From the NCBI RefSeq assembly GCF_048593235.1, contig NC_133621.1:219873238-219937237 (forward strand): a stretch of 64,000 nt of DNA, given 5' to 3'. How positions within the stretch are numbered: the stretch's first letter is position 1; the number at the start of each line of letters is the position of its first letter. The stretch is from Sminthopsis crassicaudata. Lineage: Eukaryota. Under the pieces are notes generated by a model. The model was not told the origin of the DNA. It made no database searches and worked only from the letters and a program-made list of their open reading frames with translations. Below, one piece after another: positions 4,261 to 61,208 of this stretch. Position numbers and translations under genes: made by a program.

Positions 4261-5190
4261 ATGGATGATGATAATGGGACAGCAGTGACTGAGTTCATTT
4301 TGTTGGGATTCTCAGATTTGGGGGTTTACCAGAGCACTCTCTTTTTGGGAGTGCTCTTTGTCTACTTGGTCACCTTGTTGGGTAACTCCTTGATCATCAC
4401 CCTTACCCTGTTGGACCCAGTCCTGAACACTCCCATGTACTTTTTCCTTCGACATCTCTCTCTGATAGAGATTCTCTACACTATGACTATTGTACCCAGG
4501 ATGCTGACTGATCTGCTTTTCTCCCATCCTGCCATCTCTCCTGCCAGCTGCTTCACCCAAATGTATTTCTTTGCCCTCTTTGGCATTGCTGAATGCTGTG
4601 TGCTCACTGCCATGGCCTATGACCGTTATGCTGCCATTTGTCAGCCCCTGCACTATGCCATGCTGATGAACCGGCAGGCATGTGTGGGTATGGTGGGTGC
4701 TTCTTATCTAATGGGCATCACTACAAGCACTACCCACTCCATATTCATCTTTACCTTGCCCTTCCATGGCACCAACATTGTTCACCACTTCCTATGTGAC
4801 GTTTTGCCTGTTTTGAGACTGGCAAGTGGAGACACATTCTGGGGTGAGGTTGGGAATCTTGTTGTCACCCTGCTCTTTATCATTACTCCCTTTGCACTGA
4901 TTTTGTTTTCCTATGTTCGCATCCTCATTACCATCCTTGGGGTTGCCTCTGCTCAGGGACGGCAAAAAGTCTTCTCTACTTGCTCTTCCCACCTATTGGT
5001 GGTCACACTTTTCTTTGGGACTGCAATTCTAACCTACATGAAACCTGGAACCAATGAAACTGGGGACACAGATCAAGTTCTTTCCCTTTTTTACACAGTT
5101 GTAACTCCCATGCTCAACCCTTTTATCTATACTCTGAGGAACAAGGAGGTGATGGGAGCCCTGAGGCGTAAATTAACAAAACACCTTTGA
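4261..5190 (+). CDS. Olfactory receptor, family 10 (OR10P-like), intact, 309 aa
   Basis: Single-exon ORF with OR motifs GN (TM1), LNTPMYFFL, MAYDRYAAICQPLHY, KVFSTCSSHL and [12 protein letters not shown]. Features such as HFLCDVLPVLRLAS and D.VLSLFYTV.TP recall OR10P1. A polypyrimidine tract with AG acceptor lies at ~4222-4250. Confidence 0.95.
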   Translation: MDDDNGTAVTEFILLGFSDLGVYQSTLFLGVLFVYLVTLLGNSLIITLTLLDPVLNTPMYFFLRHLSLIEILYTMTIVPRMLTDLLFSHPAISPASCFTQMYFFALFGIAECCVLTAMAYDRYAAICQPLHYAMLMNRQACVGMVGASYLMGITTSTTHSIFIFTLPFHGTNIVHHFLCDVLPVLRLASGDTFWGEVGNLVVTLLFIITPFALILFSYVRILITILGVASAQGRQKVFSTCSSHLLVVTLFFGTAILTYMKPGTNETGDTDQVLSLFYTVVTPMLNPFIYTLRNKEVMGALRRKLTKHL

Positions 5191-7682: not shown

Positions 7683-7711
7683 TTTTTTTTTTAAAGAAAC
7701 AAACTTTTATT
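7683..7711 (-). promoter_or_regulatory. Poly(A) signal plus A10 tract (putative retroposition poly(A) remnant or 3' end of the C9orf78 copy)
   Basis: Minus-strand AATAAA (7711-7706) is followed 13 nt later by A10 (7692-7683), about 110 nt past the stop. A second AATAAA lies at ~7668-7663. Confidence 0.55.
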
Positions 7712-7822
7712 TCTCTGATTTTTTACATTGCAATTTGTGTTTGACAAAAAAATAAAATCTCTGCAAAAACAAAAGAACCCCCAAACTCCAAAACAAAACC
7801 CTCTCCACTTTCCAGCTTGATA

Positions 7823-8689
7823 TCAATAGCGTCTGTTCATTTTCTTAAACTTCTCATAATGATAATCATCAGTTGCTTTTTCGTTGGGGGGGCGCTTGCG
7901 ATTCGGAGGCGACCTCTCGGCTTCCGGCTTCTCGGTATCTCCCACCCGGAGGGGTCGAGTTTTCGGCTCTTCCTTGTGCCTCCGGACTGGGGCGTGGAGC
8001 TCTTCATGATAAAAGCGGTTGTGCTGCACGTAGTTCACAGCCATGTTCGTGGGAACAAAAGAGGTTTCGCTGTCTTTCTTTTTGTTCCGCTGCTCGGCCA
8101 GCAGCCGGGCTTTGGCATCCTCGGTCGAAATGATATTTTTTATTTTTGCCTCAATGCCTAAATCCACTTCGGGGATGCCGCTCAGCATTTGGTTGGACAG
8201 CATCTCCTCCGTTTTCTTGGCGGACGAGACCCGGATGCTCTCGGGGAGCTCGTAGAGACAGTCTTCGGCATTCTTCAGCTTTACTTTCTGCTCCTCGTTT
8301 TCCACGATCCCTTTCCTCTTCTTGAGTTCCGTCTCTATGTACTTCATCATGTCGGCGTCCTCATCCCTCCGGTTGGTTTCGGCCGAAAATGATGTTCCTA
8401 AGTTGAGATCCTCCTCTTCGCTGATTCTGTCCTTGTTTCTTTCCTTAAGTTTCTTCATGTCCACCATTCCACCGGTCTTCACCTGAAAGGGATCGTCCAC
8501 CAGGGCCGTCTCTTCCTGCACTTTCTCCCCAACCAGGAGGGCTACTGCACTCACCCCGTTAGGTCGCCTCCTCAAGCTCTGAACTTCTTTGGTTTCCTCC
8601 AGTTTCAGCCGGACCTCCTCGCTGTCCTGCTCGTCCGACTCCGACTCCGAGTCGGCGCGGCGCCTGCGGAAGGTCTTACCTGCCCGCAT
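7823..8689 (-). CDS. C9orf78: C9orf78 homolog (splicing factor C9orf78 / Tls1 homolog), intact intronless retrocopy, 288 aa
   Basis: The translation matches vertebrate C9orf78 end to end as recalled (EEVRLKLEET.EVQ.LR.RPNGVSAVALLVGEKVQEE, GTSFSAETNRRDEDADMMKYIETELKKRKG, MLSNQMLSGIPEVDLGI, TNMAVNYVQHNRFY, KATDDYHYEKFKKMNRRY*). There are no introns, stops or frameshifts, and there is an A at Kozak -3. Confidence 0.97.
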   Translation of the reverse strand: MRAGKTFRRRRADSESESDEQDSEEVRLKLEETKEVQSLRRRPNGVSAVALLVGEKVQEETALVDDPFQVKTGGMVDMKKLKERNKDRISEEEDLNLGTSFSAETNRRDEDADMMKYIETELKKRKGIVENEEQKVKLKNAEDCLYELPESIRVSSAKKTEEMLSNQMLSGIPEVDLGIEAKIKNIISTEDAKARLLAEQRNKKKDSETSFVPTNMAVNYVQHNRFYHEELHAPVRRHKEEPKTRPLRVGDTEKPEAERSPPNRKRPPNEKATDDYHYEKFKKMNRRY

Positions 8690-9040
8690 GATTCCCCGCG
8701 CTCGGGATTCCCTCAGGGGCCGCAGCAGGGAAGCCTCTCACCCTCTCCGACCAGGGCACTAGGTCCTAGGTCCTAACAGGGGCTGGTGACTAGTTCCGGC
8801 GCAGGCGAGTGAGGTCAGAGGGCGCGCAGCGGCCCGTCCTGGGGGTGGGCTCTCGTGGGGGGTGCGCTCCCTCCAGCCCCTCCCGCCGCCCCCACTGACT
8901 GGGAAAGGCGGTGAGAGGGTGGGGGGCAGGGAGGAGTCCTCCCGCACGGCCTCCCGGAAGCTCCGCCCATAGCCCGTCTAGGTGAATGTGGTTGGGCAAC
9001 TTCGGCTCCGGGGCCGAATAGGGAAGCGCCTGTCCTTTAC
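8690..9040 (-). promoter_or_regulatory. CpG-island promoter of the C9orf78 retrogene (island extends ~7830-9600)
   Basis: GC- and CpG-rich and TATA-less. Contains ETS-like TTCCGG (~8794) and CCGGAAG (~8955), NRF1-like GCGCAGGCG (~8799) and GC-boxes CCGCCC (~8886, ~8964). Confidence 0.75.
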
Positions 9041-9075
9041 TTTCCAAACTTTTAATGTTGATTGTTTGTCCTCTG

Positions 9076-9333
9076 GTTGTTTGTCCGTTCTGGAAGAGGA
9101 CCATGACATCAGGGAGGGGATGCCATGACATGCAAGTGAATTGGATTTCATTAAGGAAGGCTGTGCAGGTCACCTCCCCTCCAGAGCCCTCTGGGTCCAG
9201 TGGCCAGATATAGATCAAGCGACTGGAGATGGGCTTAATGAAACGGGAGACCTTCGTCTCTTTAAGCTAAGGTCTTCAACAGGTCTCCCTTTGGCAGAGG
9301 CCGCCCCATTCAGTGGTTAAGGCTGGGTAGCAA
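9076..9333 (-). mobile_element. Marsupial RTE-dependent SINE (WALLSI/RTESINE/MAR class)
   Basis: Recognisable consensus GTTGTTTGTCC..GAAGAGGACCATGACATCAGGGAG..GCCATGACATGCAAGTGAATTGGATTT..CCCATTCAGTG.TTAAGGCT. Strand inferred from the (AAC) tail. Confidence 0.7.
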
Positions 9334-10604
9334 TCTGGGCAAAGAAGCTCCTCTTTCACCTAGTCTCCTCCCCTCCGCAACCTACATAAATACATCTCGG
9401 AAGGGAAGACCTGCGGGGTTTCCGGCCAAAGCCGAAAAGACCGCTATTTACCTTCAAACTGAAACTGCTTTCTCCAAGGCTACCAAGTGTGGATCGCTGA
9501 GCCCAAATCTTAGTGTTCTCTCTGCAGCTCTGGATACAGCAGACTACGACTCCTGCGCGTTCTCCTTGAGAATAGATGACTCCTGGACGTTTCTTCGACC
9601 TAGAAAGTTGGTTCTCTTCCAGAAAGAGGGACAAACTTAGAAAATTGCTGCTTCTTAGTCTTTTTGTTGTATCCTCATTCATATCTCTGTCCTATGAATG
9701 GATATACCTCCAGCATCTGACCCAGGGATTCTTTCTCTCTCTCTTTTTTTTAAGGCAATTGCGATTAAATGATTTGCCCAGAATCACACTGTCCCAGGTC
9801 TTCTTTCTTTTTTCTAAACTCTTTTTTTTTTTTGGGGGGGGGGTGATCTCATAACTCCTAAGAGATTAAGGATCATTTCTAGTCAGACGATTCTCTCTCC
9901 TGCTACTGGAGACTTGCATTTGAATGCCTCAGAGGCATCCCATAGTCAATAATTCCAAAACAGAATTCACTTTTCTATTCTTATAAGCCAATTTTTCTTC
10001 TATTTTTGTTGAGGATTCCTTTATCTTTCTATGTTTGAAACCTCTGAGTCATCCTTAGCCCTTTTCTCCTTGTGACTCATATCAATCAATCACCTAGGCT
10101 TGTTGAATCTGTCTCTAAGATAGTATCCGTGCCTATCTCTTTCTTGATCATTACTCTAGTTCAGACTTCACCTTTTTTGGTGGGCTATTGCAATGCTTAT
10201 CTAATCAGTAACAATAATAACATAATTATTTAACTAGATTCCTTGTTTTTAGCCTCTCTCCTCATGAATCTGTTTGCACACCACTGCTAAGTTAAAATCT
10301 CTGAAATACAAGTTTTTTTTAATTCTATTTTGGTGGGTAATCAGAGTTAAGTTAAGGGCAATGTCTGAGACATAATTTGAACTCAGATCCTCTTGACTCC
10401 AGGCCTAGTGTTCTAGCCATTACACCATCTAGCTGTCTTGAGACACAGTTTTGAGCATGTCACTCCTCTGTTTAAAAACTTTTAGTGGCTCCCTGTTATT
10501 TCTGGGATAAAAAACTCATGTGTTTGGTATTTAAAGCCTTTGACAATATGGCTCCAGCCTATTTTTCTAGACTGAATACACATTGCTCCCTATCATGAAC
10601 TCTT

Positions 10605-20768: not shown

Positions 20769-21707
20769 TTACCTGTTTTGGAGTTGCATAAACTTCTTAA
20801 TCAAGTCTTTCACCACCTGCTTGACTTGCTGATTCCTGAGGGTGTAGATGAAGGGATTCATGAGGGGAGCAATGATTGTGTTGATCAGTGAAACTCCCTT
20901 GTTGAGATCAACCCCTTTGCCTGGAGAAGGTTTTACATACATGAAAAAACAGCTGCCATAGCACATGGAGACAACAATAGCATGAGAGGAGCAGGTGGAG
21001 AAAGCTTTTCTCCTCTCTTGGGATGATGGGATTTTAATGATTGTCCGGATGATCTGGACATAAGACAGAGTGATCAACATCAAGGTGCTGAGGAGGGCTA
21101 CCAAGGCCAAAGTGAAGTCTACCATCTCCAGGACCTTTGGCCCAGTGCAAACCACTTCCATCAGAGGAGTGTAGTCACAGAAGAAGTGATTGATGTGAGA
21201 GTCACAGAAGGGGAGCTGGCTCGTCAGGACCAGAGGGACAATGATAACAGAAAAGCCAGCTAACCAACAGGTAAGGATGATCTGTGTGCAGATTTTGCTG
21301 CTCATGAGGTTTGGGTAGTGAAGGGGCTTGCAGATGGCAACATAGCGGTCATATGACATGGCAGTGAGGAGGAAGAATTCAGTGGCTCCCAGAAAAATAT
21401 GGAAGAAGTCTTGGGCAATACAGCCAGCAAAGCTAATAGTCTTGGTCCCTGTGGCGATATTGACCAACATTTTGGGGACGATGACTGTTTGGAACCAGAT
21501 CTCTAAACAGGACAAGTTCCGGAGGAAGAAATACATTGGAGTCTGTAGGCGGGTGTCCAATAGTGTCAGAGTGATAATGGTCAAGTTGCCAGAAATTGTT
21601 ATCAAGTAGGCTAGCAGCAGGAGCAGGAAAACTACCATCTGCAGGTCCTCAGTATCTGTTAATCCTTGGAGGATGAACTCAGTTATTTTAGTTTCATTGC
21701 CCATCAT
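20769..21707 (-). CDS. Olfactory receptor, family 6 (divergent OR6C-related, possibly OR6U-like), intact, 312 aa
   Basis: Motifs [41 protein letters not shown] and [15 protein letters not shown]; single exon. Confidence 0.95.
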
Positions 21708-22854: not shown

Positions 22855-23542
22855 NNNNNNNNNNNNNNNNNNNNNNNNNNNNNNNNNNNNNNNNNNNNNN
22901 NNNNNNNNNNNNNNNNNNNNNNNNNNNNNNNNNNNNNNNNNNNNNNNNNNNNNNNNNNNNNNNNNNNNNNNNNNNNNNNNNNNNNNNNNNNNNNNNNNNN
23001 NNNNNNNNNNNNNNNNNNNNNNNNNNNNNNNNNNNNNNNNNNNNNNNNNNNNNNNNNNNNNNNNNNNNNNNNNNNNNNNNNNNNNNNNNNNNNNNNNNNN
23101 NNNNNNNNNNNNNNNNNNNNNNNNNNNNNNNNNNNNNNNNNNNNNNNNNNNNNNNNNNNNNNNNNNNNNNNNNNNNNNNNNNNNNNNNNNNNNNNNNNNN
23201 NNNNNNNNNNNNNNNNNNNNNNNNNNNNNNNNNNNNNNNNNNNNNNNNNNNNNNNNNNNNNNNNNNNNNNNNNNNNNNNNNNNNNNNNNNNNNNNNNNNN
23301 NNNNNNNNNNNNNNNNNNNNNNNNNNNNNNNNNNNNNNNNNNNNNNNNNNNNNNNNNNNNNNNNNNNNNNNNNNNNNNNNNNNNNNNNNNNNNNNNNNNN
23401 NNNNNNNNNNNNNNNNNNNNNNNNNNNNNNNNNNNNNNNNNNNNNNNNNNNNNNNNNNNNNNNNNNNNNNNNNNNNNNNNNNNNNNNNNNNNNNNNNNNN
23501 NNNNNNNNNNNNNNNNNNNNNNNNNNNNNNNNNNNNNNNNNN
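22855..23542. other. Assembly gap (688 N)
   Basis: N run, preceded by a (TCTTCTTCTTGT)n simple repeat. Confidence 1.
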
Positions 23543-30942: not shown

Positions 30943-33900
30943 TCAGCATACATCCTCGTACAGTATCATTGTTGAAGTGTATAATGATCTTCTGGTTCTG
31001 CTCGTTTCACTCAGCATCAGTTGATGTAAGTCTCTCCAAGCCTCTCTGTATTTCTCCTGTTGGTCATTTCTTATAGAACAGTAATATTCCATAACATTCA
31101 TATACCATAGTTTACCCAACCATTCTCCAATTGATGGACATCCATTCATCTTCCAGCTTCTAGCCACTATGAAAAGGGCTGCCACAAACATTTTGGCACA
31201 TACAGGACCCTTTCCCTTCTCTAGTAGTTCCTTGGGGTATAAGCCCAGTAGTAGTATGGCTGGGTCAAAGGGTATGCACATTTTGATAACTTTTTGGGCA
31301 TAATTCCAGATTGCTCTCCAGAATGGTTGGATTCTTTCACAACTCCACCAACAATGCATCAGTGTCCCAGTTTTCCCACAACCCCTCCAACATTCATCGT
31401 TATTTGTTCCTGTCATTTTAGCCAATCTGACAGGTGTGTAATGATACCTCAGAGTTGTCTTAATTTGCATTTCTCTGATCAATAGTGATTTGGAACACTC
31501 TTTCATATGAGTGGAAATAGTTTTAATTTCATCATCTGAAAATTGTCTGTTCATATCCTTTGACCATTTATCAATTGGAGAATGGCTTGATTTCTTATAA
31601 ATTAAAGTCAATTCTCTGTATATTTTGGAGATGAGGCCTTTATCAGAACCTTTAACTGTAAAAATTTTTTCCCAATTTGTTACTTCCCTTCTAATCTTGT
31701 TTGCATTAGTTTTGTTTGTGCAGAAACTTTTTAATTTGGTGTAATCAAAATGTTCTATTTTGTGATCAATAATGGTCTCTAGTTCTCCCTTGGACACAAA
31801 CTCCTTCCTCCTCCACAAGTCTGAGAGGTAAACCATCCCATGTTCCTCCAATTTATTTATGATTTCGTTCTTTATGCCTAAATCTTGGACCCATTTTGAT
31901 CTAATCTTAGTATGTGGTGTTAAATGTGGGTCCATGCCTAGTTTCTGCCATACTAATTTCCAGTTTTCCCAGCATTTTTTGTCAAATAATGAATTCTTAT
32001 CCCAAAATTTGGGATCTTTGGGTTTGTCAAAGATTAGATTGCTATTTTTATTCACTATCTTGTCCTGTGAACCTAACCTATGCCACTGATCAACTAGTCT
32101 ATTTCTTAGCCAATACCAAATGGTTTTGGTGACTGTTGCTTTATAATATAGCTTTAAATCAGGTACACTTAGACCACCTTCCTCTGACTTTTTTTTCATT
32201 AGTTCCTTTGCAATTCTCGACGTTTTATTCTTCCATATGAATTTTGTTGTTATTTTTTCTAGGTCATTAAAATAGTTTCTTGGGAGTCTGATTGGTATAG
32301 CACTAAATAAATAGATTAGTTTGGGGAGTATTGTCATCTTTATTATATTCGCTCGGCCTATCCAAGAACATTGAATGTCTTTCCAATTATTTAAATCTGA
32401 CTTTATTTTTGTGGCAAGTGTTTTGTAATTTTGCTCATATAATTCCTGACTCTCCTTTGGTAGATATATTCCCAAATATTTGATACTATCGACTGTTATT
32501 TTGAATGGAATTTCTCTTTGTATCTCTTGCTGCTGGATTGTGTTGGTAATGTATAAAAATCCTGAGGATTTATGTGGATTTATTTTGTATCCTGCGACTT
32601 TGCTAAAATTCTGAATTATTTCTAATAGCTTTTTAGCAGAGTCTTTGGGGTTCTCTAAGTATACCATCATGTCATCTGCGAAAAGTGACAATTTGATTTC
32701 TTCATTTCCTACTCTAATTCCTTGGATCTCTTTCTCGGCTCTTATTGCCAAGGCTAGAGTTTCTAGTACTATATTGAATAGTAATGGTGATAGTGGGCAA
32801 CCTTGTTTCACTCCTGATCTTACAGGGAAAGGTTCTAGTTTATCACCATTACATATGATGTTTACTGAAGGTTTTAAATATATGCTCCTTATTATTTTAA
32901 GGAATAGTCCATTTATTCCTATACTCTCAAGCGTTTTTAGTAGGAATGGATGTTGGATTTTATCAAATGCCTTTTCTGCATCTATTGAGATGATCATATG
33001 GTTTTTATTAATTTGATTATTAATATGGTCAATTATACTAATAGTTTTCCTAATATTAAACCAGCCCTGCATTCCTGGTATAAATCCCACTTGGTCATAG
33101 TGTATTATCCTGGGGATGATTTTCTGAAGTCTATTTGCTAATATCTTATTTAAGATTTTAGCATCAATATTCATTAAGGAAATTGGTCTATAGTTTTCTT
33201 TCTCTGTTTTCGATCTACCTGGTTTAGGTATCAGTACCATGTCTGTGTCATAGAAGGAATTTGGTAGGACTCCTTCAATCCCTATTTTTTCAAATAGTTT
33301 ACATAGCATTGGAGTTAGTTGTTCTTTAAATGTTTGGTAGAATTCACCTGTAAATCCATCTGGTCCTGGGGACTTTTTCTTAGGAAGTTGGTTAATAGCT
33401 TGGTCTATTTCTTTTTCTGAGATGGGACTATTTAGACTACTTACTTCTTCCTCTGTTAATCTGGGCAAGCTATATTTTTGAAGGTATTCTTCCATTTCAT
33501 TTAAGTTATCGAATTTATCGGCATAAAGTTGAGCAAAGTAGCTCCTAACTATTGTTCTAATTTCCTCTTCATTAGTGGTGAGTTCACCCTTTTCATTTTC
33601 AAGACTATCAATTTGCTTTTTCTCTTTCCTTTTTTTAATCAGGTTTACTAAGGGTTTGTCTATTTTGTTGGTTTTTTCATAAAACCAACTCTTAGTTTTA
33701 TTAATTAATTCAATAGTTTTTTTACTTTCAATTTTATTAATCTCACCTTTTATTTTTTGAATTTCAAGTTTTGTGTTTATCTGGGGGTTTTTAATTTGTT
33801 CCTTTTCTAGCAATTTTAGTTGTAAACCCAATTCGTTGGCCCTCTCTTTCTCTATTTTATGCAGGTAGGCCTGTAGAGATATAAAACTTCCCCTAATTAC

Positions 33901-34778
33901 TGCTTTGGCTGTATCCCACACGATTTTGGTATGATGTCTCATTATTGTCATTTTCTTGGGTGAAGTTATTAATTATGTCTATGATTTGCTGTTTTACCCA
34001 ATCATTCTTTAGTATAAGATTATTTAGTTTCCAATTATTTTTTGGTCTATTTTCCCCTGGCTTTTTATTAAATGTTATTTTGATTGCATTATGGTCTGAA
34101 AAGGATGCATTTACTATTTCTGCCTTACTGCATTTGATTTTGAGGTTTTTATGCCCTAGTATATGATCAATTTTTGTATAGGTTCCATGAACTGCTGAGA
34201 AGAAAGTATATTCCTTTCTGTCTCCATTTAGCTTTCGCCAAAGATCTATCATATCAAACTTTTCTAGTATTCTATTTACCTCTTTGACTTCTTTCTTATT
34301 TATTTTGTGGTTTGATTTATCTAATTCTGAGAGTGCAAGGTTGAGATCTCCCGCTATTATAGTTTTGCTATCTATTTCCTCTTGCAGCTCTCTTAATTTC
34401 TCTTTTAAGAATTTAGATGCTGCACCACTTGGTGCATACATGTTTAATATTGATACTGCTTCACTATTGATGCTTCCCTTTAGCAGGATATAATGCCCTT
34501 CCTTATCTCTTTTAATTAGATCAATTTTTGTTTTTGCTTGATCTGAGATGAGGATGGCTACTCCTGCTTTTTTGGTTTTACCTGAAGCATAATAGATTCT
34601 GCTCCACCCTTTTACTTTTAGTTTGAATGTCTCATCCTGTTTCAGGTGTGTTTCCTGTAAACAACATATAGTAGGATTCTGACTTTTAATCCAGTCTGCT
34701 AACTGCTTCCTCTTTATGAGGCAGTTTTGCCCCATTCACATTTATGGTTAGAAGGACTAATTCTATATTACTTGCCAT
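30943..34778 (-). pseudogene. L1 ORF2 (endonuclease, RT, C-terminal cysteine-rich domain) with two +1 frameshifts (~34725 and ~33921)
   Basis: ATG at 34778 (MASNIELVLLTINVNG). The EN segment 33893-34735 and the RT segment 30943-33951 ([26 protein letters not shown]) are otherwise free of stops. Confidence 0.92.
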
Positions 34779-35231
34779 CCTATTAACCCCCTGCTTATGC
34801 TTTTCCCCTTTCCTTCCCTTTTACCCTCCTATCCAGTATTCAACTGGTAAACACCACTTGCTTTTCACAGCCCTCCCTTTTTAGGATCCCTCCCCCACCT
34901 TAAAGATCCTCCCCTTATTTTATCCCTTTTCCTCGAAATTACTGTATTCCCTTCCCCTTAGCTTACTCCTTCCCTTTCACTTTTCAATGAAATGGAAGAA
35001 GTTTCACCATAAATCGAATATGTCTATTGATACACGCTATGTTCATCTCCCTCCTTTCTTTCTCTCAGATATAATAGGTTACCTTTGCCTCTTCATGAGA
35101 TGTAGTACCACCACTTTATACTTTATGATATAATCTCCTTTCCATCTCTAGTTTCTAAGACAAATTGTACATATGTTCTTTACATATTTTTTTGACAGAA
35201 GTATAGTTCTCAAGATTTCTTTTTACTTTTT

Positions 35232-36408
35232 TTAGAAGTCTCTTGAGTTCTGTATTTGAAGATCAAACCTTTTATGTAGGTCTGGTTTTTTCATCAAAAA
35301 TAGATGGAATTCATTTATTTCGTTAAATGTCCATCTTCTTCCCTGGAAAACGATGCTCATTCTTGCTGGGTAAGTTATTCTTGGCTGCATACCAAGTTCC
35401 TTAGCCTTTCGGAATATCATGTTCCAGGCCCTGCGTTCTTTTAATGTGGACGCTGCTAGATCCTGTGTTATCCTTATTGTGGATCCTCCATATCTGAATT
35501 GTTTTTTTCTAGCAGCTTCCAATATCTTTTCCTTTGTCTGATGGTTCTTGAACTTGGCCACTATATTTCTTGGCGTTTTGATTTTAGGGTCCCTTTCAGT
35601 AGGTGATCGATGAATTTTCTCAATGTCTATTTTACCCTCTGTTTCCAGAATGTCTGGGCAGTTCTCTTTGATAATTTCCTCGAAAATGGTGTCCAAGCTC
35701 TTTTTTTCCTCCCATTTTTCAGGGAGTCCGATTATTCTCAAATTGTCTCTCCTGGATCTGTTTTCCAGGTCTGTTGTCTTTCTGGGTAAGGTACTTGACA
35801 GTCTTTTCAATTGTTTCATTTCTCTGGTTTTGCTTGACTCCCTCTTGGTTTCTCCTTGAGTCATTCATTTCTACTTGTTCCAGTCTAATTTTCAATGATG
35901 TATTTTCTTCACTCACTTTTTTTATATCTCTTTGTAATTGTCCAATTGAGTTTTTATCTTCTATGGAATTTTTTTCCATTTTATCCATTTTATTTTTTAG
36001 AGAGCTGATTTCTTTTTCCAGCTCTCTAATCCTGTTTTCCTTGGAGTTGTTTACCTTTTCCAGCTCACTAATCCTGTTTTCCTTGGAGTTGTTTACCTTT
36101 TCCAGCTCACTAATCTTGTTTCTCAATGATTTGATTTCTTTATCCATTCTGTCTTTGAATGCATGGGATGACCTCTCCAGGCTCTCTTGCCAAGCCTCCC
36201 TTTCCTTTTCCCATTTCTCTTCCAGCTCTCTTGTGAGAGCCTTTTTGATTTCCTCTATGAGGTTCTTTTGTATTGAGGAGCAGCTTATATCCCTCCCAGG
36301 GGATACATCTGGGGACATTCTGTTCCTAGTCTCTTCAGCATTTGAAGTTTGCTCCCTCTCCACACAGAAGCTGTCAATGGTTAGAGCCCTTTTGAATTTT
36401 TTGTTCAT
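35232..36408 (-). pseudogene. L1 ORF1 with a single +1 frameshift (~35785)
   Basis: The coiled-coil half (35719-36408) joins the RRM/CTD half (TTDLENRSRRDNLRIIGLPE, PRNIVAKF, ITQDLAASTL) if one C of CTTACCCAGA is removed. Confidence 0.92.
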
Positions 36409-38061: not shown

Positions 38062-38238
38062 NNNNNNNNNNNNNNNNNNNNNNNNNNNNNNNNNNNNNNN
38101 NNNNNNNNNNNNNNNNNNNNNNNNNNNNNNNNNNNNNNNNNNNNNNNNNNNNNNNNNNNNNNNNNNNNNNNNNNNNNNNNNNNNNNNNNNNNNNNNNNNN
38201 NNNNNNNNNNNNNNNNNNNNNNNNNNNNNNNNNNNNNN
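38062..38238. other. Assembly gap (177 N)
   Basis: N run. Confidence 1.
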
Positions 38239-42118: not shown

Positions 42119-43048
42119 TCAAATGCTCATGATTTTTCGGACCATGTCTTTGAAAGCTTGTATTACTTGCTTGTTTCTTAGAGTATAAATGAAAGGATTA
42201 AGTAAGGGGGCAACTGAGGTATTAAGTACAGCTACTCCTTTGTTGAAAGAAATACCTTCCCTTGCTGATGGTTTAACATACATGAAGATGCAACTACCAT
42301 ATGAGAGGGAGACAACGATCATGTGGGAGGAACAGGTGGAAAAGGCTTTTTTCTTTTGTTGGGCAGAGGGAAACCGAAGAATTGTCTGGATGATGTTTGT
42401 GTAGGAGAGAATCACCAGTACAAGGGTAATTGTAAGTGTTAACAGTGCTAATATAAAGTCAATTACCTCTAAGAAAGTTGTGTCTGAGCAAGAAATCTGC
42501 AGGAGAGGCCCATAGTCACAGTAATAATGGTTTAGCACATTGGATGCACAGAAATCCAGACGGCTTGTCAGGATGATAGGTGATAAAATAATTAAGAGCC
42601 CAGCCAGCCAAGAGCACAGCACAAGTTGGTTGCACACTCTAGTGTTCATGATGGTTGTGTAATGCAGAGGTTTGCAGATGGCCACATAGCGGTCATAGGA
42701 CATGGCAGCTAGAAGGTAAAACTCTGTAGCTCCCAGAAATATGGCAAAGAAGTACTGAGTGAAGCATCCCGCAAAACTGATAGTTTTGTTTCCTGTTATA
42801 AGGCTGAACAAGAGTCTGGGAGTAAAAACAGATGTGAATGAAATTTCTAAGAAGGAGAAATTTCGAAGGAAGAAATACATGGGGGTTTGAAGATGGGAGT
42901 CCAACAAGGTAAGAGTGATGATGGTCAGATTGCCAAAGATGCTGAACATATAGGTGAAAAAGAGGAAGAAGAATATTGCAACTTGGAATTCAGGGGCATC
43001 TGTCAGTCCCAGAAGGATAAACTCAGTCAGTGTGGTGAGATTTTTCAT
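42119..43048 (-). CDS. Olfactory receptor, OR6C subfamily (OR6C4/OR2AP1-like), intact, 309 aa
   Basis: Motifs [57 protein letters not shown] and [12 protein letters not shown]. Splice acceptor 17 nt before the ATG; AATAAA at 42083-42078. Confidence 0.96.
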
Positions 43049-60275: not shown

Positions 60276-61208
60276 TCATCCAATGTTCATGATTTTTCTG
60301 ACCCTATCTTTGAATGCTTGTATTACTTGCTTGTTTCTTAGGGTATAAATGAAAGGATTAAGTAAGGGGGCAATTGAAGTATTAAGTACAGCTACTCCTT
60401 TGTTGAAAGAAATACCTTCCCTTGCTGATGGTTTAACATACATGAAGATGCAACTACCATATGAGAGGGAGACAACAATCATGTGGGAGGAACAGGTGGA
60501 AAAGGCTTTTTTCTTTTGTTGGGCAGAGGGAAACTGAAGAATTGTCTGGATGATATTTGTGTAGGAGAGAATCACCAGTACAAGGGTGATTGTAAGTGTT
60601 ATCAGTGCTAATATAAAGTCAATCATCTCTAAAAGGGTTGTGTCTGAGCAAGAAATCTGCAGGAGAGGCCCATAGTCACAGAAATAATGATTTAGCACAT
60701 TGGATGCACAGAAATCCAGACGGCTTGTCAGGATGATAGGTGATAAAATAATTAAGAGCCCAGCCAGCCAAGAGCACAGCACAAGTTGGTTGCATACTCT
60801 AGTGTTCATGATGGTTGTGTAATGCAGAGGTTTGCAGATGGCCACATAGCGGTCATAGGACATGGCAGCCAGAAGGTAAAACTCTGTTGCTCCCAGAAAT
60901 ATGGCAAAGAAGTACTGAGTGAAGCATCCAGCAAAACTAATGGTTTTGTTTCCTGTTGTAAGGCTGAACAAGAGTCTGGGAGTAAAAACAGATGTGAATG
61001 AAATTTCTAAGAAGGAGAAATTTCGAAGGAAAAAATACATGGGAGTTTGAAGATGGGAGTCCAGCAAGGTAAGGGTGATAATGGTCAGATTGCCAAAGAT
61101 GCTGAACATATAGGTGAAAAAAAGGAAGAAGAATATTGCAACTTGGAATTCAGGGGCATCTGTCAGTCCCAGAAGGATGAACTCAGTCAGTGTGGTGAGA
61201 TTTTTCAT
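60276..61208 (-). CDS. Olfactory receptor, OR6C subfamily (OR6C4/OR2AP1-like), intact, 310 aa; paralog of 42119-43048
   Basis: Full OR motif set. My hand count gives 35 nt differences in 930 and 9 aa substitutions relative to the first copy. A TGA-to-GGA change adds one Gly. Confidence 0.96.

Follow-up and report, generated by a model that had tools for sequence, protein, structure and literature searches.

The 64,000-nt stretch of Sminthopsis crassicaudata DNA analysed here (the window) carries an intact, intronless copy of C9orf78. This copy arose by retroposition, has an orthologue in Sarcophilus and is under strong constraint, and its parent gene has been retained. We consider it to be a functional LINE-mediated C9orf78 retrogene, old and constrained, with its parent kept alongside it, and we give this explanation as a whole, including its predicted BRR2 binding, putative promoter and presumed expression, a probability of roughly 0.87. 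To our knowledge, the vertebrates studied have a single copy of C9orf78, which regulates BRR2 and the choice of alternative 3' splice sites. Near-absolute constraint on the protein for tens of millions of years means that dasyurids run two versions of C9orf78, and the dasyurid pair offers a natural system for learning what use is made of a second copy of a spliceosome regulator. Extreme constraint, conversion into a CpG island and an accelerated parent make this retrogene notable.

We propose the following history. A fully spliced parental C9orf78 mRNA, polyadenylated at the proximal site, would have been reverse-transcribed into an olfactory receptor (OR) cluster in a LINE-mediated event, well before S. 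crassicaudata and Sarcophilus diverged. About nine amino-acid changes would have accumulated at first, before very strong purifying selection took hold of the copy. Its full-length product would engage the BRR2 helicase at its C-terminal cassette and modulate alternative 3' splice-site choice, acting alongside the retained nine-exon parent and not as its replacement. Transcription would start from a CpG-island promoter composed of the inherited 5'UTR and non-parental GC-rich upstream DNA. The retrogene and its surroundings are laid out as follows (window coordinates):

4261-5190 (+): nearest OR gene, 309 aa, with a 7tm_4 match; the same neighbour lies beside the Sarcophilus retrogene
7683-7692 (-): poly(A) tail remnant (A10) at the 3' end of the retrocopy, where homology to the parental 3'UTR ends and the parents continue with unrelated sequence
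7693-7822 (-): 3'UTR, stemming from the proximal portion of its parental counterpart and 84-86% identical to it, with homology reaching only +107
7706-7711 (-): AATAAA polyadenylation signal, with the A tract starting 13 nt later, from the sequence and an alignment of retrocopies
7823-8689 (-): intronless C9orf78 CDS, 288 codons plus stop, identified by its ORF, Hep_59 match, protein identity and dN/dS
8690-8820 (-): parent-derived 5'UTR, ~131 nt, aligning to the Sarcophilus parent 5' region and to a didelphid mRNA
8793-8820 (-): block of 28 nt containing an ETS-like CCGGAA core; it forms the 5' boundary of the retrocopy and matches the Sarcophilus parent at 27/28 positions
8821-9086 (-): non-parental GC-rich upstream region (GC 65%, CpG o/e 0.64), the upstream half of the CpG island
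9087-9340 (no strand): high-copy SINE-like interspersed repeat bounding the unique upstream region, with contig depth in the thousands

The ORF at 7823-8689 (-) encodes 288 aa, begins with ATG and has no internal stops. Residues 100-196 of the product match the Pfam family Hep_59 (PF07052) over profile positions 1-103 of 103 (E 7.9e-29; 100.8 bits, where the profile cut-off is 22.7 bits). The protein is 96% identical to those of the opossum and tammar parents and 91-92% identical to placental and turtle proteins. Its exact sequence was found once in GCA_048593235.1, as a single-exon gene on CM109185.1 at ~219.87 Mb. The initial annotation had described a complete intronless 288-aa C9orf78 ORF followed by AATAAA and an A10 tract. 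The ORF scan and the Hep_59 match agree with the former, and the signal and tract lie at 7711-7706 and 7692-7683 on the gene strand. Of the span it had given, 7683-8760, the 3' side is correct and the 5' edge is too short, as parent-derived sequence extends to ~8820, some 60 nt farther. The S. crassicaudata and Sarcophilus copies have a 28-nt insertion in the 3'UTR in common. At the other end, many loose contig ends fall at 9087-9217 in all four runs, at the repeat that occupies 9087-9340.

Two smaller observations concern the 3' end. The A/T tract at 7683-7692 has three extra bases in run X1 and is therefore polymorphic in length; the Sarcophilus tract is A8. The proximal poly(A) site reads AATAAA in four of four retrocopies, including an independent copy in Dromiciops, versus AAGAAA in the Sarcophilus and didelphid parents. 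This contrast could mean that the signal grew stronger in the copies in parallel, or that it was the parents that changed.

Sarcophilus carries two C9orf78 genes, one multi-exon and one intronless, which are unlinked (retrogene on CM109178.1, parent on CM109175.1). We reconstructed the Sarcophilus parent as nine coding exons of 77, 60, 52, 71, 78, 198, 137, 99 and 92 nt, and the same nine-exon structure with equal exon lengths is found in the turtle and rhino parents. All eight parental introns are missing from the S. crassicaudata copy, which is colinear with the spliced CDS. Homology between the retrocopy and the parental mRNA begins at ~-131 of the 5'UTR and stops at +107 of the 3'UTR, ending with the AATAAA and the A10 tract. 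Upstream of -131, the similarity between retrocopy and parent does not rise above shuffle level, though two parents align strongly with each other there. This lack of homology rules out an inherited parental promoter beyond -131. Judged from its structure, the S. crassicaudata copy is a processed retrocopy of C9orf78, as had been claimed from the window: the parent has nine exons and the copy none of its introns. A direct-repeat search across the retrocopy boundaries found no credible target-site duplication. The initial annotation had likewise recognized none, and this absence is expected given the age of the insertion.

In human C9ORF78, residues 5-58 bind the BRR2 C-terminal cassette, with key contacts at F8, R9, R41, R43 and N45, and the R41A mutation abolishes binding (PMC8894380). 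The human protein is also a competitor of FBP21 and influences alternative splicing (PMC8894380). In the alignment, the five contacts correspond to F7, R8, R40, R42 and N44 of the window protein, and all five are kept. As a full-length protein with the BRR2-contact residues, the retrogene product most likely does what C9orf78 does, and we infer that it is a C9orf78 paralogue in function, able to bind BRR2. Like vertebrate C9orf78 (Tls1/HCA59), it has the same length, the Hep_59 core, the BRR2-contact residues and the C-terminus. Unlike the parent, the retrogene is intronless, lies on another chromosome in an OR cluster, has a short 3'UTR, is enriched in GC3 and CpG, and carries nine fixed replacements (K9R, T62A, K69Q, I70V, N90S, D180E, Q201R, N232H and P257A).

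The nine-exon parent has been kept in Sarcophilus, where two assemblies show an intact 4.6-kb gene adjoining TOR1A. In opossum, Gracilinanus and tammar, the parent spans 6-7 kb and adjoins a Torsin gene, and it is intact in opossum and tammar. Compared to the inferred ancestral marsupial protein, the Sarcophilus parent has changed at 13 residues, the opossum parent at two and the tammar parent at one, and a relative-rate test on the parents gave 12 versus 1 (P=0.003). Seven of the 13 replacements lie in the BRR2-binding N-terminus, including N45K (human numbering). The retrogene has 9-10 changes, only 1-2 of them in the BRR2-binding region. Along their lineages, nonsynonymous and synonymous changes (N/S) number 12/38 in the Sarcophilus parent and 10/44 in the retrogene. 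The acceleration of the Sarcophilus parent, seen in one parent sequence, may stem from relaxed constraint or from a functional split between the two copies once the gene was duplicated. We also observed a one-codon deletion among the N-terminal changes of this parent (L003/L004:10001-14583).

The same replacement counts and their distribution would fit a different account, in which roles have been divided or exchanged in dasyurids, with the retrogene carrying the canonical BRR2-binding C9orf78 function and the parent diverging. We regard this as unlikely. The parent is not only intact but constrained, with an omega of 0.045 between the Sarcophilus and didelphid parents, its acceleration comes from a single dasyurid, and evolution may be generally faster on the dasyurid lineage. 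Somewhat more doubtful still is the specific form of this account, in which the ancestral BRR2-binding function would by now rest mainly with the retrogene in dasyurids, and the parent, released from constraint, would be diverging in its BRR2-binding N-terminus. If true, this hand-over would be the transfer of a core spliceosome regulator from parent to retrogene, caught midway. Our preferred reading remains that of a functional retrogene acting alongside its parent.

The parent also appears to be kept in S. crassicaudata, where it is known from parent-type 5' sequence only. One contig of run X1, from the window species, equals the window up to 8820 and then matches the upstream sequence of the Sarcophilus parent at 26 of 30 positions, while this contig end matches the retrogene upstream region at chance level only. 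These results bear on the suggestion in the initial annotation that the copy is an orphan retrogene, which replaced a lost or dead parent. The parent of S. crassicaudata being known from 5' sequence only speaks for such a replacement. However, Sarcophilus has both the retrogene and the intact parent beside TOR1A, the persisting intron-containing gene about which that annotation had asked, and the X1 contig runs from the shared 5'UTR block into parent-type sequence. The orphan suggestion is therefore rejected for Sarcophilus and unlikely in S. crassicaudata, and we consider it very improbable overall.

The intronless Sarcophilus copy (locus L002) is colinear with the window over 20 kb, is 85-90% identical to it and has the same OR neighbour. 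The S. crassicaudata and Sarcophilus retrogenes differ at 38 sites, which are distributed over codon positions 1, 2 and 3 as 2, 0 and 36. Of these differences, 37 are synonymous and one is nonsynonymous (E20D), giving a dN of 0.0015, a dS of 0.234 and a dN/dS of 0.006; under neutrality, one replacement or fewer has P=4e-24. The CDS pair has no indels, while the flanks are gappy with many. Over the whole lineage, the retrogene has accumulated 10 nonsynonymous and 44 synonymous changes, and most of the nine fixed replacements are therefore older than the split between S. crassicaudata and Sarcophilus. These counts indicate an early looser phase, followed by very tight constraint. The initial annotation had asked whether an orthologous intronless copy exists at this OR locus and had claimed purifying selection; the Sarcophilus copy answers the first point, and the dN/dS between orthologues upholds the second.

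A neutral processed pseudogene with a chance-open ORF, or non-coding conservation of, for example, a regulatory CpG island serving the OR cluster, is so improbable as to be dismissed: although intact yet weakly constrained C9orf78 retrocopies do exist (two in echidna, dN/dS ~0.6), here 36 of 38 differences fall at third positions with a single replacement (P=4e-24), the frame is unbroken at a dS to the parent of at least 0.67, and the three-base periodicity means that non-coding constraint does not account for the conservation. Recent gene conversion between the Sarcophilus and S. crassicaudata copies is disfavoured by their flanks, which are only 85-90% identical. We thus return to a constrained, protein-coding retrogene.

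The dS between the retrogene and the parents is 0.67-0.89, compared to 0.58 between the Sarcophilus and didelphid parents, although a GC shift on the retrogene lineage inflates dating based on dS. The retrogene is therefore not a recent near-identical copy. Together with the Sarcophilus orthologue, this distance agrees with the old insertion that the initial annotation had claimed. A tree placing the retrogene as sister to the Sarcophilus parent was 7.8 lnL worse (p-AU 0.09), so that the phylogeny speaks against a recent dasyurid origin without rejecting it. Branching within marsupials in the C9orf78 tree had supports of 34-56%, and AU tests were not decisive.

A further sequence, L007, is a 1049-nt Logan contig (SRR17300728) whose encoded protein is 88% identical to the S. 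crassicaudata retrogene product. It has five derived retrogene residues (R9, Q69, E180, H232 and A257), and its sequence past the A tract matches the dasyurid flank. Tree support for its placement was weak, at 56/74 overall and 82/88 with codon positions 1 and 2. L007 probably represents the orthologous retrogene of a marsupial that is more distantly related. A less likely possibility is that the retrogene arose before the marsupial crown radiation, as suggested by the ancestral R9 and A12 that it keeps: position 9 is K in three of three sampled marsupial parents, and A12 is replaced by V, D or G.

The whole retrogene has become a CpG island. Its CDS contains 58 CpGs, with a CpG o/e of 0.95 and a GC3 of 0.69, whereas the parents have 26-28 CpGs and a GC3 of 0.50. 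The upstream part at 8690-9086 has a GC content of 65% and a CpG o/e of 0.62, against an o/e of 0.1-0.2 in the flanks. On the retrogene lineage, 33 changes are AT-to-GC versus 12 GC-to-AT, a ratio that is reversed in the parents. The CpG richness and the AT-to-GC excess fit long-term germline hypomethylation. The retrogene is thus a clear case of an entire retrogene becoming a CpG island, with a promoter that is perhaps partly inherited. The 28-nt block at 8793-8820 is also conserved in the didelphid mRNA and the Sarcophilus retrogene and is a candidate inherited core-promoter element. The region at 8821-9086 is the probable promoter, covered by the deepest contig of run X1. The upstream region is 84-87% conserved relative to Sarcophilus, no better than neutral flanks.

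Public sequencing runs suggest that the retrogene is transcribed but do not prove it. Retrogene and parent are about 86% identical, so that reads of one are easily told from those of the other. Run X5 covers the CDS at ~46x, continues at 6-10x over the 800 nt that follow the poly(A) site, and gives no coverage upstream of 8790. The 28-nt block lies immediately upstream of the points where contigs of X5 (8790) and X18 (8780) stop. The asymmetry of the X5 coverage looks RNA-like, with library types being guesses and no run being recorded as RNA. In run X1, the deepest contig lies over 8578-9116 and coverage spreads both ways, a pattern that looks like a chromatin assay, again with a guessed library type. 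More than 12 small public runs (40-100 million letters; several studies, at least two species labels) cover only 7847-8780, at a depth of 27-50. We set aside such small runs (X6, X18) as expression evidence, as the 3'UTR is absent from them; exon capture therefore fits better than RNA, and an exon-capture set designed for marsupials may include the retrogene among its targets.

Mammalian species carry 88-280 selectively preserved retrocopies each, and 52 intact families are marsupial-specific (Carelli et al. 2016, PMC4772013). Both inherited and non-parental promoter routes have been described for retrocopies (PMC4772013), and the inherited route was assigned to ~3% of the expressed ones (Carelli et al. 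2016, PMC4772013). Like the preserved retrogenes of Carelli et al. (PMC4772013), the C9orf78 retrogene is monoexonic and intact, evolves at a low dN/dS, has a CpG island that no other gene shares, and coexists with its parent. Unlike them, it is under unusually tight constraint, its island covers the whole gene, and its putative promoter is partly inherited 5'UTR. It also resembles orphan retrogenes such as RNF113 (PMC4772013), being old, broadly constrained, derived from a housekeeping factor and equipped with a CpG-island promoter (putative here), and differs from them in that the C9orf78 parent was not lost.

Intact C9orf78 retrocopies recur across lineages. The Dromiciops gliroides copy (P0009; L006:10001-10849, CM033370.1) is intact, intronless and NCBI-annotated and encodes 282 aa. 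It used a distal poly(A) site, with a 3'UTR reaching ~+270 and ending in A9. Beyond the retrocopy and interspersed repeats, its locus has no homology to the S. crassicaudata locus, and no OR-sized ORF was found within 10 kb of it. The Dromiciops copy shares none of the dasyurid replacements, and its lineage N/S of 16/26 shows that it is less constrained than the dasyurid retrogene. A common origin of the Dromiciops and dasyurid copies is ruled out by the distal poly(A) site, the unshared flanks and the derived residues. Echidna (Tachyglossus) has two intact, intronless and NCBI-annotated copies on two chromosomes (P0016 and P0017; L011:3001-3864 and L012:3001-3861). They share their downstream flank, and their dN of 0.041 and dS of 0.069 (ratio ~0.6) mean that they are young and weakly constrained. 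One of the echidna copies lies within a Paralemmin-family gene, on the opposite strand.

NCBI annotation of the S. crassicaudata retrogene exists, and the Sarcophilus copy is labelled as a C9orf78 homologue. The S. crassicaudata gene is best labelled as a retrogene paralogue, and orthology pipelines should keep it apart from its parent. In the searchable literature, we found no paper linking C9orf78 with a retrogene, a retrocopy or marsupials.

The location in an OR cluster, which the initial annotation had also reported, holds: four intact OR-like ORFs lie around the retrogene in the window, at 4261-5190 (+), 20769-21707 (-), 42119-43048 (-) and 60276-61208 (-). The last two OR genes encode 309 and 310 aa, and their CDSs are 96% identical while their flanks are ~88% identical over 2.5 kb. 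By this pattern, they are a tandem duplication in which the CDS is better conserved than the flanks. The window also contains two assembly gaps (N) at 22855-23542 and 38062-38238, and a near-full-length L1 at 30943-36408 (-). This L1 has a 1002-aa ORF that is the reverse-transcriptase part, judged by eye from motifs, and two overlapping ORF1-like ORFs upstream. A 280-aa ORF resembling the endonuclease part overlaps the 1002-aa ORF in another frame, and ORF2 therefore appears to be split by a frameshift.
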